From positions 2,108,001 to 2,172,000 of the forward strand of contig CM097884.1 in NCBI GenBank assembly GCA_044892505.1: a stretch of DNA of 64,000 bases. The letters are read 5' to 3'. Positions 5,684 to 47,587 of this stretch are shown piece by piece (the stretch's first letter is position 1; every line of letters starts with the position of its first letter). Under the pieces are notes generated by a model. The model ran no database searches. It was not told the origin of the DNA and saw only the letters and a list, made by a program, of their open reading frames with translations. The DNA comes from Schmidtea nova (Eukaryota). The position numbers were made by a program, and so were the translations under genes.

Positions 5684-5688
5684 AGATG

Positions 5689-10666: not shown

Positions 10667-10720
10667 TATGATACTCGCTTAGGGTGCGAGTGGTCCCGGG
10701 TTCAAATCCCGGCTGAGCCC
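10667..10720 (+). pseudogene. trnP: 3' half of tRNA-Pro interrupted by E2
   Basis: tRNA nt 19-72 at the element 3' junction. Confidence 0.95.
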
Positions 10721-10898
10721 TTTATTTTTTACAAAACGATACAAATTTCAAATTCGACTTTCGACGAAATTATCATCGGTTATTTATCGAATGAATATCG
10801 GGAAAAAGAGAAAAGCGTAAAATTCAAAATATAAAGACAACAACATGAAGAATTGACGAGAATACAAGTTTAATCAAATACAAGGTTCGATTGAGTTT

Positions 10899-11138
10899 NN
10901 NNNNNNNNNNNNNNNNNNNNNNNNNNNNNNNNNNNNNNNNNNNNNNNNNNNNNNNNNNNNNNNNNNNNNNNNNNNNNNNNNNNNNNNNNNNNNNNNNNNN
11001 NNNNNNNNNNNNNNNNNNNNNNNNNNNNNNNNNNNNNNNNNNNNNNNNNNNNNNNNNNNNNNNNNNNNNNNNNNNNNNNNNNNNNNNNNNNNNNNNNNNN
11101 NNNNNNNNNNNNNNNNNNNNNNNNNNNNNNNNNNNNNN
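10899..11138. other. Assembly gap (240 N)
   Basis: N run. Only 69 bp of spacer would be missing if a single unit spans it, so the size fits no whole number of units and is probably an estimate. Confidence 0.99.
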
Positions 11139-11243
11139 ACATTTGTTGAATTGAATAATTGAAAAATCACGTGACAAAACATGAAATGGATGATGATTTA
11201 TTGAAAATAATTAATACGGTCAACTTTTGATGAATTGACATGA

Positions 11244-11315
11244 GGCTCAGTGGTCTAGGGGTATGATACTCGCTTAGGGTGCGAGTGGTCCCGGGTTCAA
11301 ATCCCGGCTGAGCCC
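11244..11315 (+). tRNA. trnP: tRNA-Pro(AGG), intact
   Basis: Identical 72-nt cloverleaf. Confidence 0.97.
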
Positions 11316-11658
11316 TTTATTTTTTACAAAACGATACAAATTTCAAATTCGACTTTCGACGAAATTATCATCGGTTATTTATCGAATGAATATCGGGAAA
11401 AAGAGAAAAGCGTAAAATTCAAAATATAATTTGAAGAATTGACGAGAATACAAGTTTAATCAAATACAAGGTTCGATTGAGTTTGTGATGAAAGAAAACG
11501 AAAATTGGGAAATGGGAATTAAGATTAAAAAAATCTATTACAACAAAAAGAGGACATTTGTTGAATTGAATAATTGAAAAATCACGTGACAAAACATGAA
11601 ATGGATGATGATTTATTGAAAATAATTAAGACGGTCAACTTTTGATGAATTGACATGA

Positions 11659-11679
11659 GGCTCAGTGGTCTAGGGGTAT
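11659..11679 (+). pseudogene. trnP: 5' half of tRNA-Pro interrupted by E3
   Basis: tRNA nt 1-21 followed by AATTTCGTAGG. Confidence 0.95.
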
Positions 11680-11759
11680 AATTTCGTAGGAAAAGAAAGA
11701 CTGATTGTGAATTTAAAATTATAGATTACTGAATTATTGAATTGCGAAAGATGAAAAAC

Positions 11760-14394: not shown

Positions 14395-14400
14395 AGATGT

Positions 14401-17400: not shown

Positions 17401-19011
17401 AATACCGCCAAAACAATTGCATTTGAATATCGTCCAGAAAAGTGCGCTTATATGCAATATCCTAAAATAGAAACTGTAAGCGAGATCTCTGTCAACAATA
17501 TACTCATCAAAAAGATTGCAACAAATGAATTTTACCAATACTTGGGAGTACCAATAGGTGACAATAATGATCAAAGTCCCTATGAAATTGTTAGCAAAGT
17601 AATTGAAGACACAAAGAAAATAGCAAATTCTGATCTTTACGGCTGGCAAAAACTTAAAGCGTATAAGGTCTTTCTGCACTCTCGTTTGATCTTTCCATTT
17701 AGAACTAGGGAAATCAAAACAAGTTCTTTGACTGATTCAAGTAAAAATTCAAAAATCAATGTAAATAATACGAGTATCTTGAGAAGTCAGTTTAGAAAAA
17801 TATTGAACTTGCCACATTACTCTGAAATTAGCTATTTCTATAATTCTACTGAAAATGGCGGTGCAGGTTGCATAGACTTACTTGACGAATATCATACACA
17901 GACGATTGTTTACTTTTTCCGTCTCCTAACATCAACGTGCGAATATTCGAAAAAGATAAATACTGACTCGTTGTTATTTGTCACAAGACCTAGACTTGGA
18001 ATCAAAGATCCAGTTCTTAAACAAAGTTTAGAATGGATAAATGGAAAGGATAGTAAGAAAAATCACAGCGGTTGCAAAACCCGATTTTATCGACTGCGAT
18101 CATCTATTGCTTACTTTGCAAAAGTCCACAACATTAAACTGTTATTCGAAACAGTCAAAAATAATCCTTCGATTCGAATAACCACTACACTTACAGGAAC
18201 ACGCATATTATTACCGACATTAAGAAAAGCACTGTCAATGATTCTTCATTCAGCTCTTCAAGACTCATATCTTGAAAAATGGGAAAAAAGCAATCACAAT
18301 AATCTGCTTATATCTGCGATTAAACTTTGTCCACTTGTTAACAAACTTATTTTCCGCAGTGACTTGACTGAATTTGAATGGAGATTCGTCCATCGAGCTA
18401 GAACAAATACACTTTCGACATTTGCAAAACCACATAAAACCGGTGAAAATCGTCTTTGTCGTAGATGTAAGGTTGAAGACGAAACTATCCTACACGTTCT
18501 TCAAACCTGTAAAATGAACAAATCTCTAGCAACTAATCGACATAACGCTTGCTTAGAAAAAATAAAAAACGAGTTGAAAAATCCAAACTTGTTAGTTGTT
18601 GCGGACCATAAATGTTCTCTTGTACCAACATCATCTGAGCGCGTTGATTTAATAATAACCAATAATGAGAAAAAGACGATATTATTGGTAGACATGAAAT
18701 GTCCAATTGATTCTTTGCCCAACTTTGACTTGGCTGATAAAATGAATATTGAAAAATATGAAAAACTGAGATCCGAAATTAAACTAGCCAAGCCCGATTA
18801 TAAAGTTGAGTTGTTTACTTGCATCATAGGCTCTTTAGGTTCCATTGAAGTAAAGACTCCTGATCTTCTAGTTAAAATGGGCGTAAAAGAAAATAATGTT
18901 AAACGTCTGATGAAAGAGTGTGCAATAAGCAATATTGCGCACTCGGCCAAAATTTGGTTCTTTCACACCAATGGCTTTCTACCAGATGATACAAGACAAA
19001 CGTGTAAATAA
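14401..19011 (+). CDS. E3 ORF2, 1536 aa: Ulp1-like protease domains, reverse transcriptase, CCHC, RLE
   Basis: NSHW/FID/YQNNSFDCG triad; GVKQGCPIS, YADD and YLGV RT motifs; CCHC; RVD..VDMK. Confidence 0.93.
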   Translation: MPASAQSSANPSNETDAESTLKNNLSNIDDRDPEVWFSDNDIDSYLENHIDNSKHGYIKCFIVNIICSNITEDIVKIPLSITNAEIVFCPLNINNSHWILFVYCKKMLSSYFIDPIFANKQKSINKQMAQRINLKLNTFFNLNVSVSRHPHKHLEYQNNSFDCGPFTCAYAVIISKDLNSFPNGFIEKIRTSVHENQNRMQITESTLFAGTNSKMDLTKINIKKALAKKKVITNTSDMTKVLNTQKPCVSSIISKYYESNSKITVLSAELTLNLIAQNTSFIADNVTFKQFKGIDHVISIIPKFNDWCLFVYSNKLDRSYMFDFNYRNIDERLIEIGEKITEYLNQFTLVSKIKFTPHHRISHPTFHSYDDQYFASSFIVFFEKLVFERILDNDKVYDSLSALKYQSCKDLSPSLSFINGKISDKIIEEYFASLNLSTKYILLNTTMCSALSDDCTEYLKDFVNIECMMKATVIFVIISPPRAHDLLMVIDYDADEHYLLSPVTNDLFVMTEGFCYKLLIKINEIRESTGRALKSRNCRHDVKGSGLFSRLLICAFIKYYAFDRSLENINLHEIGKIIYSLVPLVDKNDNAEEERRLKSKAVNSLKLNLKQRIEKANNLIISLEHASIDEIISGILSNIPRLKDLNTEHIRTPYLGTKIEKARKFKNSTEFLSNMKKTVYRILGNNTESIAPPFQEIIDTFSHPDTLPRNWENILKFTKTSKTSLELNPMTPKEILSSLGKADNTSPGLDNVCYKDLLLLDPECKLLTFLYNKILKLDIIPTSWKSFKTILIPKPDKNGQYHKISSWRPIALLSVIYKVFASVLANRLSLWIRNNSMLHIGQKGGSEYEGCIEHNSILSAIVEHSKYSTSSPLTIAWLDIKDAFGSVPHDYMWTLLKHINVSDRFVSILKLLYSDTSSFYCCNKMQTPDIPIKKGVKQGCPISMILFAIAINPVLDAINLSNVNPFMIGTSPVQVLAYADDIALIATNTSDLQKLIDVAVNTAKTIAFEYRPEKCAYMQYPKIETVSEISVNNILIKKIATNEFYQYLGVPIGDNNDQSPYEIVSKVIEDTKKIANSDLYGWQKLKAYKVFLHSRLIFPFRTREIKTSSLTDSSKNSKINVNNTSILRSQFRKILNLPHYSEISYFYNSTENGGAGCIDLLDEYHTQTIVYFFRLLTSTCEYSKKINTDSLLFVTRPRLGIKDPVLKQSLEWINGKDSKKNHSGCKTRFYRLRSSIAYFAKVHNIKLLFETVKNNPSIRITTTLTGTRILLPTLRKALSMILHSALQDSYLEKWEKSNHNNLLISAIKLCPLVNKLIFRSDLTEFEWRFVHRARTNTLSTFAKPHKTGENRLCRRCKVEDETILHVLQTCKMNKSLATNRHNACLEKIKNELKNPNLLVVADHKCSLVPTSSERVDLIITNNEKKTILLVDMKCPIDSLPNFDLADKMNIEKYEKLRSEIKLAKPDYKVELFTCIIGSLGSIEVKTPDLLVKMGVKENNVKRLMKECAISNIAHSAKIWFFHTNGFLPDDTRQTCK

Positions 19012-19382
19012 AATTTATAAACATACAAATAATTACTTTTTTTTCCTTTAAAACTGTAAATAAAAATTAAAGTAAATATTTTGTAAAGTAATTTTAAATA
19101 AAATTTTTTTTTTTTTTTTTCTCTAAATCTGATAAATTGTCTCTGAGAGTTGTTGGAGTAAGAGACCAAATTGTCTGCGATGCTTGTTATATAATTTAGA
19201 CCTCTCAAATACTGAAGAAAGCAGTCGCAAAGCTGGATGACGAAATCCAAAGATACAGAAAAACTCCTGCAGATAGAACAATTATATATATATTTGTTAT
19301 GTGATTGTTTGAGGACTAATCCATGTTGATTAGATCATCTGTACAAAAATATTCAAATTTGTTATATTTAATAAATGTTTTA

Positions 19383-19436
19383 TATGATACTCGCTTAGGG
19401 TGCGAGTGGTCCCGGGTTCAAATCCCGGCTGAGCCC
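19383..19436 (+). pseudogene. trnP: 3' half of tRNA-Pro interrupted by E3
   Basis: tRNA nt 19-72. Confidence 0.95.
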
Positions 19437-19788
19437 TTTATTTTTTACAAAACGATACAAATTTCAAATTCGACTTTCGACGAAATTATCATCGGTTATT
19501 TATCGAATGAATATCGGGAAAAAGAGAAAAGCGTAAAATTCAAAATATAAAGACAACAACATGAAGAATTGACGAGAATACAAGTTTAATCAAATACAAG
19601 GTTCGATTGAGTTTGTGATGAAAGAAAACGAAAATTGGGAAATGGGAATTAAGATTAAAAAAATCTATTACAACAAAAAGAGGACATTTGTTGAATTGAA
19701 TAATTGAAAAATCACGTGACAAAACATGAAATGGATGATGATTTATTGAAAATAATTAATACGGTCAACTTTTGATGAATTGACATGA

Positions 19789-19860
19789 GGCTCAGTGGTC
19801 TAGGGGTATGATACTCGCTTAGGGTGCGAGTGGTCCCGGGTTCAAATCCCGGCTGAGCCC
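19789..19860 (+). tRNA. trnP: tRNA-Pro(AGG), intact
   Basis: Identical cloverleaf. Confidence 0.97.
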
Positions 19861-20203
19861 TTTATTTTTTACAAAACGATACAAATTTCAAATTCGACTT
19901 TCGACGAAATTATCATCGGTTATTTATCGAATGAATATCGGGAAAAAGAGAAAAGCGTAAAATTCAAAATATAATTTGAAGAATTGACGAGAATACAAGT
20001 TTAATCAAATACAAGGTTCGATTGAGTTTGTGATGAAAGAAAACGAAAATTGGGAAATGGGAATTAAGATTAAAAAAATCTATTACAACAAAAAGAGGAC
20101 ATTTGTTGAATTGAATAATTGAAAAATCACGTGACAAAACATGAAATGGATGATGATTTATTGAAAATAATTAAGACGGTCAACTTTTGATGAATTCACA
20201 TGA

Positions 20204-20275
20204 GGCTCAGTGGTCTAGGGGTATGATACTCGCTTAGGGTGCGAGTGGTCCCGGGTTCAAATCCCGGCTGAGCCC
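20204..20275 (+). tRNA. trnP: tRNA-Pro(AGG), intact
   Basis: Identical cloverleaf. Confidence 0.97.
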
Positions 20276-20627
20276 TTTATTTTTTACAAAACGATACAAA
20301 TTTCAAATTCGACTTTCGACGAAATTATCATCGGTTATTTATCGAATGAATATCGGGAAAAAGAGAAAAGCGTAAAATTCAAAATATAAAGACAACAACA
20401 TGAAGAATTGACGAGAATACAAGTTTAATCAAATACAAGGTTCGATTGAGTTTGTGATGAAAGAAAACGAAAATTGGGAAATGGGAATTAAGATTAAAAA
20501 AATCTATTACAACAAAAAGAGGACATTTGTTGAATTGAATAATTGAAAAATCACGTGACAAAACATGAAATGGATGATGATTTATTGAAAATAATTAAGA
20601 CGGTCAACTTTTGATGAATTGACATGA

Positions 20628-20648
20628 GGCTCAGTGGTCTAGGGGTAT
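20628..20648 (+). pseudogene. trnP: 5' half of tRNA-Pro interrupted by E4
   Basis: tRNA nt 1-21. Confidence 0.95.
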
Positions 20649-20728
20649 AATTTCGTAGGAAAAGAAAGACTGATTTTGAATTTAAAATTATAGATTACTG
20701 AATAATATAATTGCGAAAGATGAAAAAC

Positions 20729-23374: not shown

Positions 23375-26300
23375 GTGCCTGCATCAGCTCAATCTTCTGC
23401 GAATCCCTCTAATGAGACTGATGCAGAAAGCACATTAAAAAACAATCTTTCAAATATCGATGATCGTGATCCTGAAGTGTGGTTTTCTGATAATGATATT
23501 GATTGGTATCTAGAAAACCAAATTGACAATCCAAAGCATGGATACATTAAATGCTTTATAGTAAATATCATCTGTTCTAACATCACAGAAGATATTGTTA
23601 AAATTCCACCTTCTATTACCAATGCTGAAATTGTGTTTTGTCCACTTAATATTAACAATTCGCACTGGATTCTTTTTGTTTATTGTAAGAAAATGCTGTC
23701 TTCTTACTTTATTGACTCAATCTTTGCGAACAAACAAAAGCCAATCAATAAACAAATGGCTCAAAGAATTAATCTAAAACTGAATACATTTTTCAATCTA
23801 AATGTATCAGTTTCCCGTCATCCACACAAACATCTTGAATATCAGAATAACAGCTTTGACTGTGGCCCATTTACGTGTGCTTATGCTGTGATTATCAGTA
23901 AAGATTTGAACAGCTTTCCAAATGGGTTCATAGAGAAAATTCGTACCAGTGTGCATGAAAATCAAAATCGTATGCAAATAACCGAATCCACCTTATTCGC
24001 TGGTACTAACTCCAAGATGGACATGACCAAAATAAATATCAAGAAAGCTCTTGCAAAAAAGAAAGTTATCACCAACACCTCAGATATGACCAAAGTATTG
24101 AACACTCAAAAACCGTGTGTGTCATCAATAATTAGTAAATATTACGAAAGTAATTCTAAAATAACAGTCTTATCTGCTGAACTAACTTTAAACCTAATTG
24201 CACAAAATACCTCCTTCATAGCTGATAATGTCACTTTCAAGCAGTTCAAAGGAATCGATCATGTTATAAGCATCATTCCTAAATTTAACGATTGGTGTCT
24301 CTTTGTCTATTCGAATAAACTTGACAGGAGCTACATGTTCGACTTCAATTATCGAAACATTGATGAAAGGCTAATTGAAATTGGTGAAAAGATAACTGAA
24401 TATCTGAATCAATTCACTCTTGTTTCTAAAATAAAATTCACACCTCATCATAGAATTTCTCATCCAACATTTCATTCTTATGATGATCAATATTTTGCAA
24501 GTTCTTTTATTGTATTTTTTGAGAAACTTGTCTTTGAAAGAATACTTGACAATGATAAGGTTTATGACTCATTAAGTGCTTTAAAATATCAGTCTTGTAA
24601 AGATCTTTCTCCTAGCCTAAGTTTCATTAATGGTAAAATATCCGACAAAATTATTGAGGAATATTTTGCTAGCCTAAACTTATCGACCAAATATATTCTT
24701 CTAAACACAACAATGTGTAGTGCGCTTTCAGATGATTGCACTGAATACTTGAAAGACTTTGTAAACATTGAGTGCATGATGAAGGCCACTGTTATCTTTG
24801 TAATCATTTCTCCTCCAAGAGCCAACGACTTGCTCATGGTTATTGATTACGACGCTGATGAGCACTATTTATTAAGCCCAGTCACTAATGACTTGTTCGT
24901 TATGACTGAAGGATTCTGCTATAAATTACTAATTAAAATTAATGAGATTAGAGAGAGCACAGGACGTGCCTTGAAATCGCGTAATTGTCGACATGACGTT
25001 AAAGGTTCTGGCTTATTTAGTAGGTTATTAATCTGTGCCTTTATTAAATATTATGCATTTGACCGATCTCTAGAAAATATCAACCTACATGAAATTGGCA
25101 AAATTATCTACTCACTTGTGCCATTAGTTGATAAAAATGATAATGCTGAGGAAGAAAGACGACTAAAATCAAAAGCTGTAAACTCTTTAAAACTAAATTT
25201 AAAACAGCGAATAGAAAAAGCGAATAATCTTATAATTTCACTTGAACACGCCAGTATTGATGAAATCATAAGTGGCATTCTTTCAAATATTCCTCGTCTT
25301 AAAGATTTGAACACCGAACACATTCGTACACCATATTTAGGTACTAAAATAGAAAAAGCTAGGAAATTCAAAAATTCCACTGAATTTCTGTCAAACATGA
25401 AAAAGACTGTGTATAGGATTTTGGGTAACAACACAGAATCGATTGCACCTCCTTTCCAGGAAATTATTGACACTTTCAGTCATCCTGATACATTACCTAG
25501 AAATTGGGAAAACATCTTAAAATTTACAAAAACTTCTAAAACTAGTCTTGAATTAAATCCAATGACACCTAAAGAAATCCTGTCAAGTCTTGGCAAAGCT
25601 GACAACACTTCTCCAGGTCTTGATAATGTCTGTTATAAAGATCTTTTGCTATTAGACCCTGAATGCAAATTGTTAACTTTTCTTTACAATAAAATCCTAA
25701 AATTAGATATTATTCCCACAAGTTGGAAATCATTTAAAACTATACTGATTCCAAAACCAGATAAAAATGGCCAATATCATAAAATATCTTCTTGGCGACC
25801 AATTGCTTTATTATCTGTGATTTACAAAGTTTTCGCTTCAGTTTTGGCCAATCGCCTTAGTTTGTGGATAAGAAATAATTCCATGTTACATATTGGCCAA
25901 AAGGGTGGTTCAGAATACGAAGGATGTATTGAACACAACTCTATCCTTTCTGCTATCGTCGAACACTCAAAATATAGCACATCATCACCTTTAACGATAG
26001 CTTGGCTAGACATCAAAGATGCCTTTGGAAGTGTGCCACATGATTACATGTGGACACTATTAAAACACATAAATGTTAGTGATAGGTTTGTGAGCATTTT
26101 AAAACTGCTGTATACTGACACGAGCTCGTTCTATTGTTGCAATAAAATGCAGACACCAGACATTCCAATAAAGAAAGGTGTTAAACAAGGTTGTCCGATC
26201 TCAATGATATTGTTTGCAATAGCTATTAACCCAGTACTTGACGCTATTAATTTGTCAAACGTCAATCCTTTTATGATAGGAACGTCTCCGGTACAGGTGT

Positions 26301-27984
26301 TGGCTTATGCGGATGATATCGCACTTATCGCGACTAATACCTCTGATCTTCAAAAACTCATAGACGTTGCTGTAAATACCGCCAAAACAATTGCATTTGA
26401 ATATCGTCCAGAAAAGTGCGCTTATATGCAATATCCTAAAATAGAAACTGTAAGCGAGATCTCTGTCAACCATATACTCATCAAAAAGATTGCAACAAAT
26501 GAATTTTACCAATACTTGGGAGTACCAATAGGTGACAATAATGATCAAAGTCCCTATGAAATTGTTAGCAAAGTAATTGAAGACACAAAGAAAATAGCAA
26601 ATTCCGATCTTTACGGCTGGCAAAAACTTAAAGCGTATAAGGTCTTTCTGCACTCTCGTTTGATCTTTCCATTTAGAACTAGGGAAATCAAAACAAGTTC
26701 TTTGACTGATTCTAGTAAAAATTCAAAAATCAATGTAAATAATACGAGTATCTTGAGAAGTCAGTTTAGAAAAATATTGAACTTGCCACATTACTCTGAA
26801 ATTAGCTATTTCTATAATTCTACTGAAATGGCGGTGCAGGTTGCATAGACTTACTTGACGAATATCATACACAGACGATTGTTTACTTTTTCCGTCTCCT
26901 AACATCAACGTGCGAATATTCGAAAAAGATAAATACTGACTCGTTGTTATTTGTCACAAGACCTAGACTTGGAATCAAAGATCCAGTTCTTAAACAAAGT
27001 TTAGAATGGATAAATGGAAAGGATAGTAAGAAAAATCACAGCGGTTGCAAAACCCGATTTTATCGACTGCGATCATCTATTGCTTACTTTGCAAAAGTCC
27101 ACAACATTAAACTGTTATTCGAAACAGTCAAAAATAATCCTTCGATTCGAATAACCACTACACTTACAGGAACACGCATATTATTACCGACATTAAGAAA
27201 AGCACTGTCAATGATTCTTCATTCAGCTCTTCAAGACTCATATCTTGAAAAATGGGAAAAAAGCAATCACAATAATCTGCTTATATCTGCGATTAAACTT
27301 TGTCCACTTGTTAACAAACTTATTTTCCGCAGTGACTTGACTGAATTTGAATGGAGATTCGTCCATCGAGCTAGAACAAATACACTTTCGACATTTGCAA
27401 AACCACATAAAACCGGTGAAAATCGTCTTTGTCGTAGATGTAAGGTTGAAGACGAAACTATCCTACACGTTCTTCAAACCTGTAAAATGAACAAATCTCT
27501 AGCAACTAATCGACATAACGCTTGCTTAGAAAAAATAAAAAACGAGTTGAAAAATCCAAACTTGTTAGTTGTTGCGGACCATAAATGTTCCCTTGTACCA
27601 ACATCATCTGAGCGCGTTGATTTAATAATAACCAATAATGAGAAAAAGACGATATTATTGGTAGACATGAAATGTCCAATTGATTCTTTGCCCAACTTTG
27701 ACTTGGCTGATAAAATGAATATTGAAAAATATGAAAAACTGAGATCCGAAATTAAACTAGCCAAGCCCGATTATAAAGTTGAGTTGTTTACTTGCATCAT
27801 AGGCTCTTTAGGTTCCATTGAAGTAAAGACTCCTGATCTTCTAGTTAAAATGGGCGTAAAAGAAAATAATGTTAAACGTCTGATGAAAGAGTGTGCAATA
27901 AGCAATATTGCGCACTCGGCCAAAATTTGGTTCTTTCACACCAATGGCTTTCTACCAGATGATACAAGACAAACGTGTAAATAA
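23375..27984 (+). pseudogene. E4 ORF2 with a 1-bp deletion
   Basis: GAAATGGC at 26825-26832; split into 23375-26848 and 26944-27984. Confidence 0.88.
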
Positions 27985-29181: not shown

Positions 29182-29202
29182 GGCTCAGTGGTCTAGGGGT
29201 AT
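29182..29202 (+). pseudogene. trnP: 5' half of tRNA-Pro interrupted by E5
   Basis: tRNA nt 1-21. Confidence 0.95.
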
Positions 29203-29282
29203 AATTTCGTAGGAAAAGAAAGACTGATTTTGAATTTAAAATTATAGATTACTGAATAATTGAATTGCGAAAGATGAAAAAC

Positions 29283-31922
29283 ATGCCTCAATCACTTGCT
29301 GCTCTGTCAACTGCTGCTGATGTGTTGACTCAGTCTATTGAAAATCAGTCAACTGTGACGAAGCATTGTGCATTGGAAAACATTGTTAAATGTCAAATTT
29401 CCAACTTGCAATGTTTTCAGTCTTTTTTGGATAACTTTTTTCAATTGCATTGTGGAAATCGTTCTTCTGCATCAGTTCTTTCTGATGCTAATGCAAATCA
29501 ACGGAGTTCTTCCTTCGATCAAGGATCAAAAAATTCTCAAGGACAATCTGAGAACATGCCAATTTCTTATCCTGATATTGAGAATAAATTTCCTAACTCA
29601 AAGGATTTATTGATTGTCAAGCGCCTGGATTCATTGGAGGCTCTATTTTTGAACATGGCTGAAAAGGTAGATTATTTGGTTTCTTGTTTTAATGGCTCTG
29701 TTGATAGTTTGTCAGATTTTCCTAAAATAATTGAAAATAATTTAAATAATAATCTTTTTAATAAAAATAAAGTTATTGATTTAAAAGATAATGTAAATGT
29801 AAATAATATATGTTCTAATAAATTAAATACTTTGGATTCTTCCGAAACTAATACTGTAAATAAAACAAATATTTTATCTGATGTATATAATAATAAGATC
29901 CTTAATTCGAATAGTAAATTTTCTAATAATTCTCCTGAAGATAAATTTAAAAATGTAAATATTTCAAGAGATAATGCTTTAATTGATTTAAATAACGCGA
30001 AAATTATTCCAACTGAAAACCTAGAAATAATTATCAAAAATAATAAAAAATCCGTTAAAATCATTGAACCTAGTAAAACAAATAAAAAGAAAATTGATAA
30101 ATTTGAATTTAAAAGCCTGGTTCGTATTTTAACGAAAAGAGAACGCCAGCAAATCTTGAGTGCTTTTCCTGCCTTGATCCAAATGATTAAAAAGAAGGAA
30201 TCGCAAAATAAATATATTGAAATAAATAAATTTCTTTCTGGTAAAGAATGTAATGTTAATATCCTAAATGTAAATAATTTTGAATATTTCTTTTATAGGA
30301 ATTTCAATATTTGTGTGTCCTTAAAATTGAATGAGGCTTCTGTAATTTCATCAGCACCGAAACCCGTTGTTTCAAAAACTATTAAATTAATTGACCATAA
30401 TATCGTCAAAATAGATTCTGAAATCGCTGACTTTGTTCAAGCTCCAATGTCAATTCGAAAATTTCTATTCAATCTTTCGGATGATCTTTCAAACACTGTT
30501 TCCATCAAGGATGATAAACATAGGGGAAATAAAATAAATAGCATTCTTACTTCGATGAAACAAAAACAACAACTGCCAGATTATTTAATAAAATCTAATA
30601 TTAAATACGAAAATGGCGAGTTTTTATTATTAGATTTAACTAACACAGATGTCAAATTGAAAGACGATAATAATTTAATAAGATCGAGTTTTTCTGAACT
30701 TACTAGAAGTCAGATTAGGAATCTTTACAATTCATATCCTTCTCTTAAGGAAGTTTGTTTCGTTGAAAATCTAGAAACAAGATCCCCATCAGTTAGTAAA
30801 ATGATTGACTCTTTAAAAATTAATAATGAATTTCCAAAAAATATAATTTATAAAGAGGGTAAATTTTATCAATCTGATAAAAAACTAATTTCTCCCAGTA
30901 GTTCTCCTGACATAATGTTCAACCTTGGTCTGTTTGATTTGGCTAGTATGAGTAAAAAAGATTGTGAGTTAAAATTCATCTTAGAGAAGACTGGTTGTGA
31001 CTTTAAAATAGTTGAAATAATATTCTACCTCAACTATTTGGGTTTGACTCGATCTTTGGATTTTTGCAAAAATCAAATTTATTCTGATTATGTAAGGAAT
31101 TACATCTGTAATTGCGGCTTAATAAACTCACTCTGTAGTATTGCTGATGTTGATTCGCTTTCACCTGAGGATTTTGAGGGTTGGGCGACCGAAATTGTTC
31201 AGAAAATCCCAGTTTCTTCCTATTACTTCAGTAGCTGTCAGGAAAAGCTTTTAAAGTTGAAACAATGGGACATTTCAACTGAAATCAAAAAAATCCATAA
31301 CGTTATTTCACCTGAAATAATTTCTTATTTAAATAAATTTCTTGACTCTGTAGACGTAAAATTTCCAGCTAAATCTCAACAAAATAATATTTTAATTAAA
31401 TTAATGAAAGCTATCAATGACATTAAAATTGTTGATGACATACACGGAAATAAAGCAAAACGACTTGTTTACTTTTTGCTGAGAGACGCCAAGATATATT
31501 TGAATAAAAATCAGCGATTTAGATTATTTGAATCGAGCAATAAATATTGCACTTCAGAAATGGGGAAATTAATTTTAGTGATAATTGAGAACCTCAACAA
31601 AGTTACTGACAATGAAATTATTACTCTTACAAGCACAGTTGAAGAAAAGCCAATTGAAAAAATTTGTGATCCTGAACCTATTGTTTTGATTGAAGAAACA
31701 AGTTGCTTAAGATGCAACAATATCATTGACAATTGCATTCTAGTTAGAGATGGAACAAACATCAACATCTGTGAAAGTTGCATATTTGATGCAATCTCTT
31801 CTGCGAAGCCGATTACCGAAGCTCCTCATTCAGATATAGAAGAAGATATAGAAATAATTAGTAAGAAATCTTGTCCAAAAACCAGAAAAACAGACAAGAA
31901 AACATCAACAAAAGCGAAATGA
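29283..31922 (+). CDS. E5 ORF1 (intact)
   Basis: Open frame homologous to E2 ORF1. Confidence 0.87.
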   Translation: MPQSLAALSTAADVLTQSIENQSTVTKHCALENIVKCQISNLQCFQSFLDNFFQLHCGNRSSASVLSDANANQRSSSFDQGSKNSQGQSENMPISYPDIENKFPNSKDLLIVKRLDSLEALFLNMAEKVDYLVSCFNGSVDSLSDFPKIIENNLNNNLFNKNKVIDLKDNVNVNNICSNKLNTLDSSETNTVNKTNILSDVYNNKILNSNSKFSNNSPEDKFKNVNISRDNALIDLNNAKIIPTENLEIIIKNNKKSVKIIEPSKTNKKKIDKFEFKSLVRILTKRERQQILSAFPALIQMIKKKESQNKYIEINKFLSGKECNVNILNVNNFEYFFYRNFNICVSLKLNEASVISSAPKPVVSKTIKLIDHNIVKIDSEIADFVQAPMSIRKFLFNLSDDLSNTVSIKDDKHRGNKINSILTSMKQKQQLPDYLIKSNIKYENGEFLLLDLTNTDVKLKDDNNLIRSSFSELTRSQIRNLYNSYPSLKEVCFVENLETRSPSVSKMIDSLKINNEFPKNIIYKEGKFYQSDKKLISPSSSPDIMFNLGLFDLASMSKKDCELKFILEKTGCDFKIVEIIFYLNYLGLTRSLDFCKNQIYSDYVRNYICNCGLINSLCSIADVDSLSPEDFEGWATEIVQKIPVSSYYFSSCQEKLLKLKQWDISTEIKKIHNVISPEIISYLNKFLDSVDVKFPAKSQQNNILIKLMKAINDIKIVDDIHGNKAKRLVYFLLRDAKIYLNKNQRFRLFESSNKYCTSEMGKLILVIIENLNKVTDNEIITLTSTVEEKPIEKICDPEPIVLIEETSCLRCNNIIDNCILVRDGTNINICESCIFDAISSAKPITEAPHSDIEEDIEIISKKSCPKTRKTDKKTSTKAK

Positions 31923-31928
31923 AGATGT

Positions 31929-34900
31929 GTGCCTGCATCAGCTCAATCTTCTGCGAATCCCTCTAATGAGACTGATGCAGAAAGCACATTAAAAAATAAT
32001 CTTTCAAATATCGATGATCGTGATCCTGAAGTGTGGTTTTCTGATAATGATATTGATTGGTATCTAGAAAACCACATTGACAATTCAAAGCATGGATACA
32101 TTAAATGCTTTATAGTAAATATAATCTGTTCTAACATCACAGAAGATATTGTTAAAATTCCACTTTCTATTACCAATGCTGAAATTGTGTTTTGTCCACT
32201 TAATATTAACAATTCGCACTGGATTCTTTTTGTTTATTGTAAGAAAATGCTGTCTTCTTACTTTATTGACCCAATCTTTGCGAACAAACAAAAGTCAATC
32301 AATAAACAAATGGCTCAAAGAATTAATCTAAAACTGAATACATTTTTCAATCTAAATGTATCAGTTTCCCGTCATCCACACAAACATCTTGAATATCAGA
32401 ATAACAGCTTTGACTGTGGCCCATTTACGTGTGCTTATGCTGTGATTATCAGTAAAGATTTGAACAGCTTTCCAAATGGGTTCATAGAGAAAATTCGTAC
32501 CAGTGTGCATGAAAATCAAAATCGTATGCAAATAACCGAATCCACCTTATTTGCTGGTACTAATTCCAAGATGGACTTGACCAAAATAAATATCAAGAAA
32601 GCTCTTGCAAAAAAGAAAGTTATCACCAACACTTCAGATATGACCAAAGTATTGAACACTCAAAAACCGTGTGTGTCATCAATAATTAGTAAATATTACG
32701 AAAGTAATTCTAAAATAACAGTATTATCTGCTGAACTAACTTTAAACCTAATTGCACAAAATACCTCCTTCATAGCTGATAATGTCACTTTCAAGCAGTT
32801 CAAAGGAATCGATCATGTTATAAGCATCATTCCTAAATTTAACGATTGGTGTCTCTTTGTCTATTCGATTAAACTTGACAGGAGCTACATGTTCGACTTC
32901 AATTATCGAAACATTGATGAAAGGCTAATTGAAATTGGTGAAAAGATAACTGAATATCTGAATCAATTCACTCTTGTTTCTAAAATAAAATTCACACCTC
33001 ATCATAGAATTTCTCATCCAACATTTCATTCTTATGATGATCAATATTTTGCAAGTTCTTTTATTGTATTTTTTGAGAAACTTGTCTTTGAAAGAATACT
33101 GGACAATGATAAGGTTTATGACTCATTAAGTGATTTGAAATATCAGTCTTGTAAAGATCTTTCTCCTAGCCTAAGTTTCGTTAATGGTAAAATATCCGAC
33201 AAAATTATTGAGGAATATTTTGCTAGCCTAAACTTATCGACCAAATATATTCTTCTAAACACAACAATGTGTAGTGCGCTTTCAGATGATTGCACTGAAT
33301 ACTTGAAAGACTTTGTAAACATGGAGTGCATGATGAAGGCCACTGTTATCTTTGTAATCATTTCTCCTCCAAGAGCCCACGACTTGCTCATGGTTATTGA
33401 TTACGACGCTGATGAGCACTATTTATTAAGCCCAGTCACTAATGACTTGTTCGTTATGACTGAAGGATTCTGCTATAAACTACTAATTAAAATTAATGAG
33501 ATTAGAGAGAGCACAGGACGTGCTTTGAAATCGCGTAATTGTCGACATGACGTTAAAGGTTCTGGCTTATTTAGTAGGTTATTAATCTGTGCCTTTATTA
33601 AATATTATGCATTTGACCGATCTCTAGAAAATATCAACCTACATGAAATTGGCAAAATTATCTACTCACTTGTGCCATTAGTTGATAAAAATGATAATGC
33701 TGAGGAAGAAAGACGACTAAAATCAAAAGCTGTAAACTCTTTAAAACTAAATTTAAAACAGCGAATAGAAAAAGCGAATTATCTTATTATTTCATTTGAA
33801 CACGCCAGTATTGATGAAATCATAAGTGGCATTCTTTCAAATATTCCTCGCCTTAAAGATTTGAACACCGAACACATTCGTACACCATATTTAGGTACTA
33901 AAATAGAAAAAGCTAGGAAATTCAAAAATTCCACTGAATTTCTGTCAAACATGAAAAAGACTGTGTATAGGATTTTGGGTAACAACACAGAATCGATTGC
34001 ACCTCCTTTCCAGGAAATTATTGACACTTTCAGTCATCCTGATACATTACCTAGAAATTGGGAAAACATCTTAAAGTTTACAAAAACTTCTAAAACTAGT
34101 CTTGAATTAAATCCAATGACACCTAAAGAAATCCTGTCAAGTCTTGGCAAAGCTGACAACACTTCTCCAGGTCTTGATAATGTCTGTTATAAAGATCTTT
34201 TGCTATTAGACCCTGAATGTAAATTGTTAACTTTTCTTTACAATAAAATCCTAAAATTAGATATTATTCCCACAAGTTGGAAATCATTTAAAACTATACT
34301 GATTCCAAAACCAGATAAAAATGGCCAATATCATAAAATATCTTCTTGGCGACCAATTGCTTTATTATCTGTGATTTACAAAGTTTTCGCTTCAGTTTTG
34401 GCCAATCGCCTTAGTTTGTGGATAAGAAATAATTCCATGTTACATATTGGCCAAAAGGGTGGTTCAGAATACGAAGGATGTATTGAACACAACTCTATCC
34501 TTTCTGCTATCGTCGAACACTCAAAATATAGCACATCATCACCTTTAACGATAGCTTGGCTAGACATCAAAGATGCCTTTGGAAGTGTGCCACATGATTA
34601 CATGTGGACACTATTAAAACACATAAATGTTAGTGATAGGTTTGTGAGCATTTTAAAACTGCTCTATACTGACACGAGCTCGTTCTATTGTTGCAATAAA
34701 ATGCAGACACCAGACATTCCAATAAAGAAAGGTGTTAAACAAGGTTGTCCGATCTCAATGATATTGTTTGCAATAGCTATTAACCCAGTACTTGACGCTA
34801 TTAATTTGTCAAACGTCAATCCTTTTATGATAGGAACGTCTCCGGTACAGGTGTTGGCTTATGCGGATGATATCGCACTTATCGCGACTAATACCTCTGA

Positions 34901-36539
34901 TCTTCAAAAACTCATAGACGTTGCTGTAAATACCGCCAAAACAATTGCATTTGAATATCGTCCAGAAAAGTGCGCTTATATGCAATATCCTAAAATAGAA
35001 ACTGTAAGCGAGATCTCTGTCAACCATATACTCATCAAAAAGATTGCAACAAATGAATTTTACCAATACTTGGGAGTACCAATAGGTGACAATAATGATC
35101 AAAGTCCCTATGAAATTGTTAGCAAAGTAATTGAAGACACAAAGAAAATAGCAAATTCCGATCTTTACGGCTGGCAAAAACTTAAAGCGTATAAGGTCTT
35201 TCTGCACTCTCGTTTGATCTTTCCATTTAGAACTAGGGAAATCAAAACAAGTTCTTTGACTGATTCTAGTAAAAATTCAAAAATCAATGTAAATAATACG
35301 AGTATCTTGAGAAGTCAGTTTAGAAAAATATTGAACTTGCCACATTACTCTGAAATTAGCTATTTCTATAATTCTACTGAAAATGGCGGTGCAGGTTGCA
35401 TAGACTTACTTGACGAATATCATACACAGACGATTGTTTACTTTTTCCGTCTCCTAACATCAACGTGCGAATATTCGAAAAAGATAAACACTGACTCGTT
35501 GTTATTTGTCACAAGACCCAGACTCGGAATCAAAAATCCAGTTCTTAAACAAAGTTTAGAATGGATAAATGGAAAGGATAGTAAGAAAAATCACAGCGGT
35601 TGCAAAACCCGATTTTATCGACTGCGATCATCTATTGCTTACTTTGCAAAAGTCCACAACATTAAACTGTTATTCGAAACAGTCAAAAATAATCCTTCGA
35701 TTCGAATAACCACTACACTTACAGGAACACGCATATTATTACCGACATTAAGAAAAGCACTGTCAATGATTCTTCATTCAGCTCTTCAAGACTCATATCT
35801 TGAAAAATGGGAAAAAAGCAATCACAATAATCTGCTTATATCTGCGATTAAACTTTGTCCACTTGTTAACAAACTTATTTTCCGCAGTGACTTGACTGAA
35901 TTTGAATGGAGATTCGTCCATCGAGCTAGAACAAATACACTTTCGACATTTGCAAAACCACATAAAACCGGTGAAAATCGTCTTTGTCGTAGATGTAAGG
36001 TTGAAGACGAAACTATCCTACACGTTCTTCAAACCTGTAAAATGAACAAATCTCTAGCAACTAATCGACATAACGCTTGCTTAGAAAAAATAAAAAACGA
36101 GTTGAAAAATCCAAACTTGTTAGTTGTTGCGGACCATAAATGTTCTCTTGTACCAACATCATCTGAGCGCGTTGATTTAATAATAACCAATAATGAGAAA
36201 AAGACGATATTATTGGTAGACATGAAATGTCCAATTGATTCTTTGCCCAACTTTGACTTGGCTGATAAAATGAATATTGAAAAATATGAAAAACTGAGAT
36301 CCGAAATTAAACTAGCCAAGCCCGATTATAAAGTTGAGTTGTTTACTTGCATCATAGGCTCTTTAGGTTCCATTGAAGTAAAGACTCCTGATCTTCTAGT
36401 TAAAATGGGCGTAAAAGAAAATAATGTTAAACGTCTGATGAAAGAGTGTGCAATAAGCAATATTGCGCACTCGGCCAAAATTTGGTTCTTTCACACCAAT
36501 GGCTTTCTACCAGATGATACAAGACAAACGTGTAAATAA
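31929..36539 (+). CDS. E5 ORF2: Ulp1-like x3, RT, CCHC, RLE (in frame with ORF1, no AUG at the start)
   Basis: Motifs as in E3; the GTG start is the track's choice. Confidence 0.93.
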   Translation: MPASAQSSANPSNETDAESTLKNNLSNIDDRDPEVWFSDNDIDWYLENHIDNSKHGYIKCFIVNIICSNITEDIVKIPLSITNAEIVFCPLNINNSHWILFVYCKKMLSSYFIDPIFANKQKSINKQMAQRINLKLNTFFNLNVSVSRHPHKHLEYQNNSFDCGPFTCAYAVIISKDLNSFPNGFIEKIRTSVHENQNRMQITESTLFAGTNSKMDLTKINIKKALAKKKVITNTSDMTKVLNTQKPCVSSIISKYYESNSKITVLSAELTLNLIAQNTSFIADNVTFKQFKGIDHVISIIPKFNDWCLFVYSIKLDRSYMFDFNYRNIDERLIEIGEKITEYLNQFTLVSKIKFTPHHRISHPTFHSYDDQYFASSFIVFFEKLVFERILDNDKVYDSLSDLKYQSCKDLSPSLSFVNGKISDKIIEEYFASLNLSTKYILLNTTMCSALSDDCTEYLKDFVNMECMMKATVIFVIISPPRAHDLLMVIDYDADEHYLLSPVTNDLFVMTEGFCYKLLIKINEIRESTGRALKSRNCRHDVKGSGLFSRLLICAFIKYYAFDRSLENINLHEIGKIIYSLVPLVDKNDNAEEERRLKSKAVNSLKLNLKQRIEKANYLIISFEHASIDEIISGILSNIPRLKDLNTEHIRTPYLGTKIEKARKFKNSTEFLSNMKKTVYRILGNNTESIAPPFQEIIDTFSHPDTLPRNWENILKFTKTSKTSLELNPMTPKEILSSLGKADNTSPGLDNVCYKDLLLLDPECKLLTFLYNKILKLDIIPTSWKSFKTILIPKPDKNGQYHKISSWRPIALLSVIYKVFASVLANRLSLWIRNNSMLHIGQKGGSEYEGCIEHNSILSAIVEHSKYSTSSPLTIAWLDIKDAFGSVPHDYMWTLLKHINVSDRFVSILKLLYTDTSSFYCCNKMQTPDIPIKKGVKQGCPISMILFAIAINPVLDAINLSNVNPFMIGTSPVQVLAYADDIALIATNTSDLQKLIDVAVNTAKTIAFEYRPEKCAYMQYPKIETVSEISVNHILIKKIATNEFYQYLGVPIGDNNDQSPYEIVSKVIEDTKKIANSDLYGWQKLKAYKVFLHSRLIFPFRTREIKTSSLTDSSKNSKINVNNTSILRSQFRKILNLPHYSEISYFYNSTENGGAGCIDLLDEYHTQTIVYFFRLLTSTCEYSKKINTDSLLFVTRPRLGIKNPVLKQSLEWINGKDSKKNHSGCKTRFYRLRSSIAYFAKVHNIKLLFETVKNNPSIRITTTLTGTRILLPTLRKALSMILHSALQDSYLEKWEKSNHNNLLISAIKLCPLVNKLIFRSDLTEFEWRFVHRARTNTLSTFAKPHKTGENRLCRRCKVEDETILHVLQTCKMNKSLATNRHNACLEKIKNELKNPNLLVVADHKCSLVPTSSERVDLIITNNEKKTILLVDMKCPIDSLPNFDLADKMNIEKYEKLRSEIKLAKPDYKVELFTCIIGSLGSIEVKTPDLLVKMGVKENNVKRLMKECAISNIAHSAKIWFFHTNGFLPDDTRQTCK

Positions 36540-36909
36540 AATTTATAAACATACAAATAATTACTTTTTTTTCCTTTAAAACTGTAAATAAAAATTAAAG
36601 TAAATATTTTGTAAAGTAATTTTAAATAAAATTTTTTTTTTCTTTTTCTCTAAATCTGATAAATTGTCTCTGAGAGTTGTTGGAGTAAGAGACCAAATTG
36701 TCTGCGATGCTTGTTATATAATTTAGACCTCTCAAATACTGAAGAAAGCAGTCGCAAAGCTGGATGACGAAATCCAAAGATACAGAAAAACTCCTGCAGA
36801 TAGAACAATTATATATATATTTGTTATGTGATTGTTTGAGGACTAATCCATGTTGATTAGATCATCTGTACAAAAATATTCAAATTTGTTATATTTAATA
36901 AATGTTTTA

Positions 36910-36963
36910 TATGATACTCGCTTAGGGTGCGAGTGGTCCCGGGTTCAAATCCCGGCTGAGCCC
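36910..36963 (+). pseudogene. trnP: 3' half of tRNA-Pro interrupted by E5
   Basis: tRNA nt 19-72. Confidence 0.95.
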
Positions 36964-45040: not shown

Positions 45041-45094
45041 TATGATACTCGCTTAGGGTGCGAGTGGTCCCGGGTTCAAATCCCGGCTGAGCCC
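45041..45094 (+). pseudogene. trnP: 3' half of tRNA-Pro interrupted by E6
   Basis: tRNA nt 19-72. Confidence 0.95.
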
Positions 45095-45446
45095 TTTATT
45101 TTTTACAAAACGATACAAATTTCAAATTCGACTTTCGACGAAATTATCATCGGTTATTTATCGAATGAATATCGGGAAAAAGAGAAAAGCGTAAAATTCA
45201 AAATATAAAGACAACAACATGAAGAATTGACGAGAATACAAGTTTAATCAAATACAAGGTTCGATTGAGTTTGTGATGAAAGAAAACGAAAATTGGGAAA
45301 TGGGAATTAAGATTAAAAAAATCTATTACAACAAAAAGAGGACATTTGTTGAATTGAATAATTGAAAAATCACGTGACAAAACATGAAATGGATGATGAT
45401 TTATTGAAAATAATTAAGACGGTCAACTTTTGATGAATTGACATGA

Positions 45447-45518
45447 GGCTCAGTGGTCTAGGGGTATGATACTCGCTTAGGGTGCGAGTGGTCCCGGGTT
45501 CAAATCCCGGCTGAGCCC
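45447..45518 (+). tRNA. trnP: tRNA-Pro(AGG), intact
   Basis: Identical cloverleaf. Confidence 0.97.
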
Positions 45519-45870
45519 TTTATTTTTTACAAAACGATACAAATTTCAAATTCGACTTTCGACGAAATTATCATCGGTTATTTATCGAATGAATATCGGG
45601 AAAAAGAGAAAAGCGTAAAATTCAAAATATAAAGACAACAACATGAAGAATTGACGAGAATACAAGTTTAATCAAATACAAGGTTCGATTGAGTTTGTGA
45701 TGAAAGAAAACGAAAATTGGGAAATGGGAATTAAGATTAAAAAAATCTATTACAACAAAAAGAGGACATTTGTTGAATTGAATAATTGAAAAATCACGTG
45801 ACAAAACATGAAATGGATGATGATTTATTGAAAATAATTAAGACGGTCAACTTTTGATGAATTGACATGA

Positions 45871-45942
45871 GGCTCAGTGGTCTAGGGGTATGATACTCGC
45901 TTAGGGTGCGAGTGGTCCCGGGTTCAAGTCCCGGCTGAGCCC
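45871..45942 (+). tRNA. trnP: tRNA-Pro(AGG), intact, T-loop variant TTCAAGT
   Basis: A>G at 45928 (Sprinzl position 59, a variable position). Confidence 0.93.
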
Positions 45943-46294
45943 TTTATTTTTTACAAAACGATACAAATTTCAAATTCGACTTTCGACGAAATTATCATCG
46001 GTTATTTATCGAATGAATATCGGGAAAAAGAGAAAAGCGTAAAATTCAAAATATAAAGACAACAACATGAAGAATTGACGAGAATACAAGTTTAATCAAA
46101 TACAAGGTTCGATTGAGTTTGTGATGAAAGAAAACGAAAATTGGGAAATGGGAATTAAGATTAAAAAAATCTATTACAACAAAAAGAGGACATTTGTTGA
46201 ATTGAATAATTGAAAAATCACGTGACAAAACATGAAATGGATGATGATTTATTGAAAATAATTAAGACGGTCAACTTTTGATGAATTGACATGA

Positions 46295-46366
46295 GGCTCA
46301 GTGGTCTAGGGGTATGATACTCGCTTAGGGTGCGAGTGGTCCCGGGTTCAAATCCCGGCTGAGCCC
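46295..46366 (+). tRNA. trnP: tRNA-Pro(AGG), intact
   Basis: Identical cloverleaf. Confidence 0.97.
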
Positions 46367-46718
46367 TTTATTTTTTACAAAACGATACAAATTTCAAATT
46401 CGACTTTCGACGAAATTATCATCGGTTATTTATCGAATGAATATCGGGAAAAAGAGAAAAGCGTAAAATTCAAAATATAAAGACAACAACATGAAGAATT
46501 GACGAGAATACAAGTTTAATCAAATACAAGGTTCGATTGAGTTTGTGATGAAAGAAAACGAAAATTGGGAAATGGGAATTAAGATTAAAAAAATCTATTA
46601 CAACAAAAAGAGGACATTTGTTGAATTGAATAATTGAAAAATCACGTGACAAAACATGAAATGGATGATGATTTATTGAAAATAATTAAGACGGTCAACT
46701 TTTGATGAATTCACATGA

Positions 46719-46790
46719 GGCTCAGTGGTCTAGGGGTATGATACTCGCTTAGGGTGCGAGTGGTCCCGGGTTCAAATCCCGGCTGAGCCC
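46719..46790 (+). tRNA. trnP: tRNA-Pro(AGG), intact
   Basis: Identical cloverleaf. Confidence 0.97.
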
Positions 46791-47142
46791 TTTATTTTTT
46801 ACAAAACGATACAAATTTCAAATTCGACTTTCGACGAAATTATCATCGGTTATTTATCGAATGAATATCGGGAAAAAGAGAAAAGCGTAAAATTCAAAAT
46901 ATAAAGACAACAACATGAAGAATTGACGAGAATACAAGTTTAATCAAATACAAGGTTCGATTGAGTTTGTGATGAAAGAAAACGAAAATTGGGAAATGGG
47001 AATTAAGATTAAAAAAATCTATTACAACAAAAAGAGGACATTTGTTGAATTGAATAATTGAAAAATCACGTGACAAAACATGAAATGGATGATGATTTAT
47101 TGAAAATAATTAAGACGGTCAACTTTTGATGAATTGACATGA

Positions 47143-47214
47143 GGCTCAGTGGTCTAGGGGTATGATACTCGCTTAGGGTGCGAGTGGTCCCGGGTTCAAA
47201 TCCCGGCTGAGCCC
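47143..47214 (+). tRNA. trnP: tRNA-Pro(AGG), intact
   Basis: Identical cloverleaf. Confidence 0.97.
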
Positions 47215-47566
47215 TTTATTTTTTACAAAACGATACAAATTTCAAATTCGACTTTCGACGAAATTATCATCGGTTATTTATCGAATGAATATCGGGAAAA
47301 AGAGAAAAGCGTAAAATTCAAAATATAAAGACAACAACATGAAGAATTGACGAGAATACAAGTTTAATCAAATACAAGGTTCGATTGAGTTTGTGATGAA
47401 AGAAAACGAAAATTGGGAAATGGGAATTAAGATTAAAAAAATCTATTACAACAAAAAGAGGACATTTGTTGAATTGAATAATTGAAAAATCACGTGACAA
47501 AACATGAAATGGATGATGATTTATTGAAAATAATTAAGACGGTCAACTTTTGATGAATTGACATGA

Positions 47567-47587
47567 GGCTCAGTGGTCTAGGGGTAT
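47567..47587 (+). pseudogene. trnP: 5' half of tRNA-Pro interrupted by E7
   Basis: tRNA nt 1-21. Confidence 0.95.

Follow-up and report, generated by a model that had tools for sequence, protein, structure and literature searches.

A tRNA-Pro-targeting non-LTR retrotransposon of Schmidtea nova combines a predicted C48 protease domain with two tandem pseudo-protease domains

Architecture of the element

The window analyzed here is a 64 kb stretch of DNA (64,000 nucleotides, nt) of Schmidtea nova (assembly GCA_044892505.1, contig CM097884.1, positions 2,108,001 to 2,172,000, forward strand), and all coordinates below are positions within it. It is made up of tandem repeats of a 424-bp unit with a tRNA-Pro(AGG) gene; at about eight places, an element of 7.7 kb breaks this array. 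The second open reading frame (ORF2) of this element opens with a module of three domains, designated D1, D2, and D3: a C48 (Ulp1/SENP) protease domain with a complete predicted active site, followed by two pseudo-proteases for which the same fold is predicted. This module precedes a reverse transcriptase (RT) and a putative restriction-like endonuclease (RLE) region. The copy studied comprises the following features; amino acid (aa) numbers refer to ORF2 unless stated otherwise.

29203-36909, forward strand: full element copy (7707 bp) in a tRNA-Pro(AGG) gene, placed by BLAST of the empty tRNA unit, with the junctions read
29265-31919, forward strand: ORF1, 885 codons with the first ATG at 29274, no match to any Pfam family
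31920-31922, forward strand: in-frame UGA between ORF1 and ORF2, putative programmed readthrough site according to frame, spacing, and conserved following residues
31929-31987, forward strand: predicted RNA stem-loop, 7 nt 3' of the UGA, with arms at 31929-31943 and 31970-31987 (RNAalifold, four elements)
31929-36539, forward strand: ORF2, 1536 codons by translation, terminator TAA
32025-32513, forward strand: D1, C48 protease domain with intact predicted active site, aa 33-195 (Pfam PF02902, SENP2/SENP8 alignment)
32514-32663, forward strand: D1-D2 linker, basic and poorly conserved, with Ala209-Gly210-Thr211 (32553-32561) as candidate self-cleavage site
32664-33149, forward strand: D2, predicted C48-fold pseudo-protease, aa 246-407 (AlphaFold2, Foldseek, hhalign, BLASTP)
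33171-33692, forward strand: D3, predicted C48-fold pseudo-protease, aa 415-588 (AlphaFold2, Foldseek, hhalign, BFVD matches)
33693-34301, forward strand: basic linker plus RT N-terminal extension, containing the invariant motif PYLG at 33885-33896
34302-35081, forward strand: RT domain, aa 792-1051 (Pfam RVT_1)
35901-36536, forward strand: C-terminal Cys/His motif and putative RLE region (weak zf-RVT match, motifs by eye)

A protease domain followed by two pseudo-protease domains

Relatives of the module were collected in two ways. A word search with ORF2 aa 1-620 yielded two full-length relatives with 46 and 41% identity over these residues, in both of which D1, D2, and D3 are all conserved. 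A profile search of the whole library with D2 and D3 retrieved 17 representative proteins out of 1.8 billion, all of them from the element's own family and several representing full-length elements with C48 and RVT_1 domains. Where individual relatives have to be told apart, they are given by our handles (P for proteins, L for contigs).

D1 scores 37.9 bits (E 2.3e-9) with Pfam Peptidase_C48 (PF02902), whose cut-off is 20.7, and phmmer aligned it with SENP2, SENP8, SENP1, and Ulp1 via the WxxD, HW, and Q..DCG motifs. The catalytic residues are His97 (32217-32219), Asp114 (32268-32270), the oxyanion residue Gln157 (32397-32399), and Cys163 (32415-32417), accompanied by both tryptophans of the Gly-Gly clamp, Trp36 and Trp98. 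Among eight family members, the four catalytic positions and Trp98 are invariant; Trp36 is kept in seven and replaced by Lys in P0017. Judged by its sequence, D1 is a C48 (Ulp1/SENP) domain with a complete predicted catalytic apparatus.

The two following domains are far less easily recognized. BLASTP aligned D1 and D2 in register (E 7e-5, 28% identity over 80 residues); the pairs D1-D3 and D2-D3 gave no significant BLASTP match. Taken alone, neither D2 nor D3 matched a Pfam family, and the same held for the equivalent pieces of six relatives, save a sub-threshold C48 hit in the second domain of P0017. Profile searches of the PDB sequences with D2 and with D3 returned nothing meaningful. Comparison of three-sequence profiles by hhalign gave weak and short matches between the domains. 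With family profiles, which were built from 8-14 sequences and are thus shallow alignments, all three pairs were linked: D1-D2 with E 2.7e-6 over 101 columns (5.5e-5 without bridging sequences), D1-D3 with E 2e-9 over 158 columns (5.4e-5 without them), and D2-D3 with E 9.3e-10 over 156 columns (2.9e-6 without them). Reversed or column-shuffled D1 profiles, serving as controls, gave P values of 0.08-0.8.

Relatives with only two domains bridge the three types. P0010 and P0017 consist of D1 and a D3-like domain, and P0014 of D1 and a single domain whose start resembles D2 and whose end resembles D3. The latter could be an ancestral single pseudo-domain or a D2/D3 recombinant. The second domain of P0017 resembles a lightly damaged C48 domain (..KWLLFV..YCLDP..GDSGPLICSY..); its sole Pfam match is Peptidase_C48, below threshold with E 0.0096. 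Hidden Markov models (HMMs) were built for D1, D2, and D3 with the two-domain relatives left out; against them, the second domain of P0017 reached 56, 36, and 48 bits and that of P0014 reached 24, 79, and 39 bits, respectively. The hhalign links, together with the HMM scores of these two second domains, indicate that D1, D2, and D3 are paralogues originating from internal duplication.

Structure prediction points in the same direction. D2 and D3 were modeled with AlphaFold2 on alignments devoid of any D1 sequence, the models reaching a mean predicted local distance difference test (pLDDT) of 88.7 and a predicted template modeling score (pTM) of 0.85 for D2, and 90.6 and 0.88 for D3. For each domain, the top 50 Foldseek matches listed from the PDB contain clan CE proteases only. 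Those listed for D2 are NEDP1/Den1 (best, E 6.5e-5), SENP3, Ulp1, and SENP5, with template modeling (TM) scores of 0.56-0.64. D3 is matched best by Ulp1 (1euv; E 1.2e-6, TM score 0.73-0.74, root-mean-square deviation 3.1 Å over 168 columns), then by SENP5, SENP2, and SENP1. Compared with predicted viral structures (BFVD), D3 gave significant matches led by Ulp-like proteases, with pS273R of African swine fever virus (ASFV) at rank 23. According to these models, D2 and D3 have the clan CE/C48 fold.

Both domains have lost essential catalytic positions. D2 has Asp306 in place of the His and no Cys at the head of its central helix (around Asp371/Gln372), and the equivalent of the catalytic Asp, Asp323, is kept in the window element only, the relatives having Glu, Asn, Ser, and other residues. 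D3 possesses a His (His484) in the element studied; at this position, two of the seven copies in the window have Asn, and relatives have Leu, Tyr, Gly, Lys, or Asn. The Asp position of D3 is taken by Ser501, with Asn in most relatives, and its nucleophile position by a Ser, which is Ser549 according to profile alignment and helix position or Ser545 according to the GSGLF motif. Having lost the complete triad, D2 and D3 are pseudo-proteases.

A first-pass annotation of this DNA, made from its letters alone, had proposed three tandem Ulp1/SENP-like folds, the first catalytic with a full His-Asp-Gln-Cys site, the second lacking His and Cys, and the third lacking Asp and Cys. All motifs and residue numbers that it quoted are found in the ORF2 translation, its assignment of present and missing residues agrees with ours, and Pfam (for D1), hhalign, and AlphaFold2 with Foldseek (for D2 and D3) concur on the fold. 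Structure prediction, named beforehand as the test that could refute the fold of D2 and D3, returned the C48 fold for both.

Conservation of the module

All seven ORF2 copies in the window have the triple C48-like module, and in five of them the frame is open. Across the family, mean pairwise identity amounts to 36% for D1, 31% for D2, and 36% for D3, compared with 25% for the D1-D2 linker, and the lineages compared are only 22-48% identical within the D2/D3-type domains. Conservation is poor in the C-terminal half of D2, where P0008 has a deletion. Since D2 and D3 retain an identity like that of D1 despite the lost triad, their conservation indicates that both are maintained by selection. The predicted isoelectric points are 6.2 for D2 and 5.6 for D3, and 10.2 and 9.2 for the flanking linkers.

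A putative readthrough site and a candidate cleavage site

ORF1 and ORF2 lie in one frame and are split by a single UGA, with the same frame and spacing in the window element and in the relatives L001, L002, and L003. The residues following the UGA in these four elements are R-C-V-P-A-S, R-Y-V-P-A-S, R-D-V-P-A-S, and R-C-L-P-A-S. Directly after the UGA, the Arg codon is AGA or CGG, two relatives having UGA CGG. The first in-frame ATG of ORF2 comes no earlier than aa 107, i.e., past His97 of D1. Downstream of the stop, RNAalifold on the four elements predicts a stem with the arms CCUGCAUCAG (31929-31943) and CUGAUGCAG (31970-31987), which form 15 pairs, two of them compensatory. Across the four elements, 93% of the cells in the stem are paired, compared with 18-41% when the partners are slid, and the window sequence alone folds with -26.6 kcal/mol (z -4.47). 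The corresponding UGA/stem regions lie at 511-580 in L001, 1980-2050 in L002, and 1822-1910 in L003.

Taken together, the UGA, the conserved residues, and the stem would form the anatomy of programmed stop-codon readthrough. Based on the shared frame, the conserved residues after the UGA, the stem-loop, and the lack of an early ATG in ORF2, we infer that the protease module sits in the middle of an ORF1-ORF2 readthrough polyprotein. The first-pass annotation had regarded ORF2 as a separate protein, a view which has to be given up in light of the single UGA in a common frame and the conserved residues and stem behind it.

Two simpler accounts of the junction were considered and ruled out. A GTG at 31929 does not serve as the ORF2 start, as one relative has CTC at this position and the two preceding codons are conserved as protein. 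Nor is UGA a sense codon of the host: it occurs once per ~2400 codons, always at the ORF1/ORF2 junction, and ORF2 itself terminates with TAA.

A candidate substrate site follows D1. Nine of 13 relatives carry GGG, and a tenth (P0009) GG, in the flexible linker 38-49 residues past the D1 Cys (e.g., aa 208-210 in P0001, 207-209 in P0002, 246-248 in P0004, and 209-212 in P0006), and this is nearly the sole Gly-Gly within the first 800 residues of those relatives. At the same position, all seven window copies have Ala209-Gly210-Thr211 (GCT GGT ACT). The closest relatives all share Gly210, and Ala209-Gly210 is the only Ala-Gly in ORF1 and ORF2 aa 1-800. With the GGG that the family carries after D1 and with the readthrough polyprotein, self-processing would be the best-supported and ancestral role of D1. 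The first-pass annotation had noted the lack of a Gly-Gly site and counted it against self-processing; the observation is accurate for the window element, and the argument loses its force given that relatives carry GGG or GG after D1.

Insertion site, classification, and further features of the window

The interrupted tRNA gene flanks the studied copy on both sides:

29182-29202, forward strand: tRNA nt 1-21, 5' fragment of the split tRNA-Pro gene, junction read
36910-36963, forward strand: tRNA nt 19-72, 3' fragment of the split tRNA-Pro gene, junction read, TAT repeated

BLAST of the empty 424-bp unit against the window placed the break-points of all element copies at a single site, tRNA-Pro(AGG) nt 19-21. 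The 5' flank runs up to tRNA nt 21, and nt 19 is the first position of the 3' flank, so that TAT (nt 19-21) is duplicated. Junction sequences were read directly for the copy at 29203-36909, and the other copies were placed via their BLAST flank break-points. The 3' end at 36909, the only one read, lacks a poly(A) tail.

The RT domain matches Pfam RVT_1 with E 4e-29, and among solved proteins, those of R2 retrotransposons come nearest to the RT part (9nl2, E 6e-53), with LINE-1 ORF2p behind them. Near the ORF2 C-terminus, zf-RVT is a weak Pfam match (E 0.014), and the motifs CRRC...H...C and D...VDMK were read by eye. Upstream of the RT, no apurinic/apyrimidinic endonuclease (APE) domain was found, and Pfam detected neither a zinc finger nor a Myb domain in ORF2, in line with the first-pass annotation, which had described the module as a replacement of the R2-type DNA-binding region. 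Because the RT is nearest to R2 proteins and the insertions share a single point in the tRNA gene, the element is classified as a site-specific R2/NeSL-like non-LTR retrotransposon (one lacking long terminal repeats) with tRNA-Pro as its target. Scans for tRNAs in the relatives' contigs L001 and L002, both of which end within the element, returned nothing.

The window has a G+C content of 27-35% and holds 12 intact tRNA-Pro(AGG) copies (Rfam and ARAGORN). The stretches at 1698-2963 and 45041-47587, as well as the flanks of every element, consist of the same 424-bp tRNA-Pro(AGG) unit. The two interrupted ORF2 copies, at 5690-10299 and 23375-27984, carry identical substitutions, and the first has a 1-bp deletion ~3450 nt into ORF2; a block at ~3026-20710 seems to be repeated at an offset of 17,685 bp. 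The shared substitutions and this offset repeat suggest that the block arose by a segmental duplication of the array, not by independent insertions. A run of 240 N at 10899-11138 lies inside one array unit. For the element behind this run (12696-14201), the listed ORF1 has only 501 aa, and the DNA matches the full ORF1 region with 98% identity and 11 gaps.

Two motifs outside the protease module may be mentioned. Near the C-terminus of ORF1, a CxxC-x18-CxxC motif (31704-31781, ORF1 aa 814-839) is present in L001, altered in L003, and absent from L002; it is possibly a zinc ribbon that, in the predicted readthrough protein, would immediately precede the protease module. Between D3 and the RT, the P-Y-L-G motif (aa 653-656), followed by basic residues, is invariant in all relatives reaching this region.

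Interpretation

On balance, we favor the following model as the probable one. ORF1 would be made by normal termination at the UGA, and the conserved signal suggests that a fraction of ribosomes passes the stop and yields the ORF1-ORF2 polyprotein. D1 would then cut after a small-residue/Gly site ~46 residues past its catalytic Cys, to which conservation points and which in this element corresponds to the bond between Ala-Gly and Thr. The cut would free an ORF1-D1 product and a D2-D3-RT-endonuclease protein. On the latter, D2 and D3, whose conservation calls for some function, may act as a non-catalytic scaffold that binds a protein partner, be it a ubiquitin-like protein, ORF1, or a host factor.

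Several points weigh against this model. The window element contains no Gly-Gly in ORF1 and ORF2 aa 1-800, and has Ala at P2. Ulp1/SENP enzymes need Gly-Gly, and the acceptance of Ala-Gly is known only for other clan CE proteases, e.g., poxvirus I7. The cleavage site is assigned via conservation alone, the motif after D1 is absent in P0010 and P0016, and between ORF1 and D1 the window element offers no candidate site. As for the pseudo-domains, the Gly-Gly-clamp tryptophans are kept across the family in neither D2 nor D3, their Cys-equivalent residues are set by profile alignment and helix position to within a few residues, and the role ascribed to both domains is a guess.

According to a second explanation, which we regard as rather unlikely, D1 acts in trans on host proteins as a deSUMOylase or another ubiquitin-like deconjugase, and D2 and D3 bind SUMO, the whole serving to counter SUMO-dependent silencing. 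The full SENP-type site of D1 including both clamp tryptophans is what such an enzyme would show, and a strict Gly-Gly site is missing in the window element. D3 in turn has Ser at the Cys position, and its best structural match among the Foldseek matches listed is Ulp1 in complex with SUMO. A Cys-to-Ser Ulp1 domain reportedly binds SUMO tightly. SUMO-dependent targeting of Ulp1 is the subject of PMC3216068. However, the GGG right after D1 in the family and the readthrough polyprotein point to a substrate in cis, and the tryptophans that would hold the SUMO tail are not kept in D2 and D3. The PIWI-interacting RNA (piRNA) analogy for host silencing comes from Drosophila and gains no support from this analysis. 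A role of D1 as trans deSUMOylase and SUMO binding by D2 and D3 could possibly coexist with the self-processing mechanism.

Still less credit is given to D2 and D3 as a target-recognition module in place of zinc finger and Myb, which would bind the tRNA-Pro gene or an RNA polymerase III (Pol III) factor and steer the endonuclease to nt 21. The two domains do occupy the place of the R2 DNA-binding N-terminus in an ORF2 without a zinc finger or Myb domain there, the insertion is strictly site-specific, and after the proposed cleavage D2-D3 would form the N-terminus of the RT/endonuclease. Their mildly acidic character next to basic linkers nevertheless disfavors direct binding of nucleic acid. 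The ORF1 CxxC...CxxC motif could bind nucleic acid instead, though not all family members have it, and the linker, the RLE region, or RNA-DNA pairing are alternative means of target recognition. A variant combining both ideas, to which we concede an outside chance, sees D2-D3 as readers of SUMO or another ubiquitin-like protein that are kept on the RT/endonuclease and guide it to SUMO-modified Pol III complexes on tRNA genes. If true, target selection in a site-specific retrotransposon would have passed from the zinc finger/Myb region to a pair of pseudo-proteases.

A last view, in which D2 and D3 have no function and are decaying leftovers of duplication, or do not even adopt the C48 fold, is very improbable and largely refuted already: their lack of Pfam or PDB sequence matches when searched alone, the poor conservation of the C-terminal half of D2, and the P0008 deletion fit such a view, but they are set against confident models with only clan CE among the listed structural matches, significant and controlled profile links among all three domains, a conservation like that of D1 across diverged lineages in which the linker decayed, and open frames in five of seven window copies.

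Comparison with known systems

The Ulp1-like protease of NeSL-type retrotransposons has been known since 2000, and to our knowledge its function has never been established. The present element offers a sharper handle on this role, with a predicted readthrough polyprotein, a GGG at 38-49 residues past the Cys in the family, and two conserved dead copies of the protease. An N-terminal Ulp1-like protease is documented for nematode NeSL, as the first-pass annotation had it, and likewise for Utopia-1_TSP (PMC4640811). Like NeSL-1 (Caenorhabditis) and Utopia-1_TSP (Trichinella), the element is a non-LTR element, putatively of the RLE type, with a multicopy small-RNA gene as its specific target and an Ulp1-like protease upstream of the RT. 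Whereas those two are described with one protease domain after zinc fingers in a single ORF, it has three C48 domains, no zinc finger in ORF2, and an ORF1 of 885 codons joined by putative UGA readthrough.

Our element is probably NeSL-1_TV, the suffix presumably standing for Trichomonas vaginalis, or a relative thereof; the match is one of target gene and broad clade and is made by description only. The G+C content of the window (27-35%) accords with this assignment but is no proof of it. NeSL-1_TV is a Repbase family reported to be specific for tRNA-Pro genes, with a phylogenetic position reported as unresolved (PMC4640811). On the domain structure of this family and on a multiplied protease, that paper is silent. 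The protease in NeSL-type elements and the specificity for tRNA-Pro are therefore already published. In the open-access literature we found no description of a triplication with two conserved pseudo-protease domains, of the fixed GGG motif, or of a UGA readthrough signal in such elements, nor of tandem pseudo-C48 domains in the Ulp1/SENP family.

The fold common to D1, D2, and D3, for the latter two by model, is that of Ulp1, SENP, and NEDP1 (PF02902; PDB 1euv, 1tgz, 2bkr). D1 resembles these cellular enzymes in its His-Asp-Cys triad, its oxyanion Gln, and the two tryptophans of the Gly-Gly tunnel. They possess a single catalytic domain, in contrast to the present module, where neither D2 nor D3 has the nucleophile or a conserved His. 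This makes the module a clean natural case of pseudo-enzyme evolution via tandem duplication within clan CE.

As a CE-fold cysteine protease of a mobile entity with a proposed function in precursor cutting, D1 is also comparable to adenain, poxvirus I7, and ASFV pS273R. These viral proteases cut their own precursors after sites of the Gly-Gly or Ala-Gly type. They differ in acting in trans on capsid precursors and in having no accompanying pseudo-domains.

Programmed UGA readthrough with a downstream stem would be unusual for non-LTR elements, and we know of no description of stop readthrough with a downstream RNA structure for those of the RLE type. The closest parallels are gammaretroviral Gag-UAG-Pol and the UGA-CGG plus stem-loop of RNA viruses, which likewise combine a leaky stop with a conserved RNA structure ~8 nt on. 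In gammaretroviruses and some RNA viruses, this arrangement sets the ratio of upstream to downstream product.

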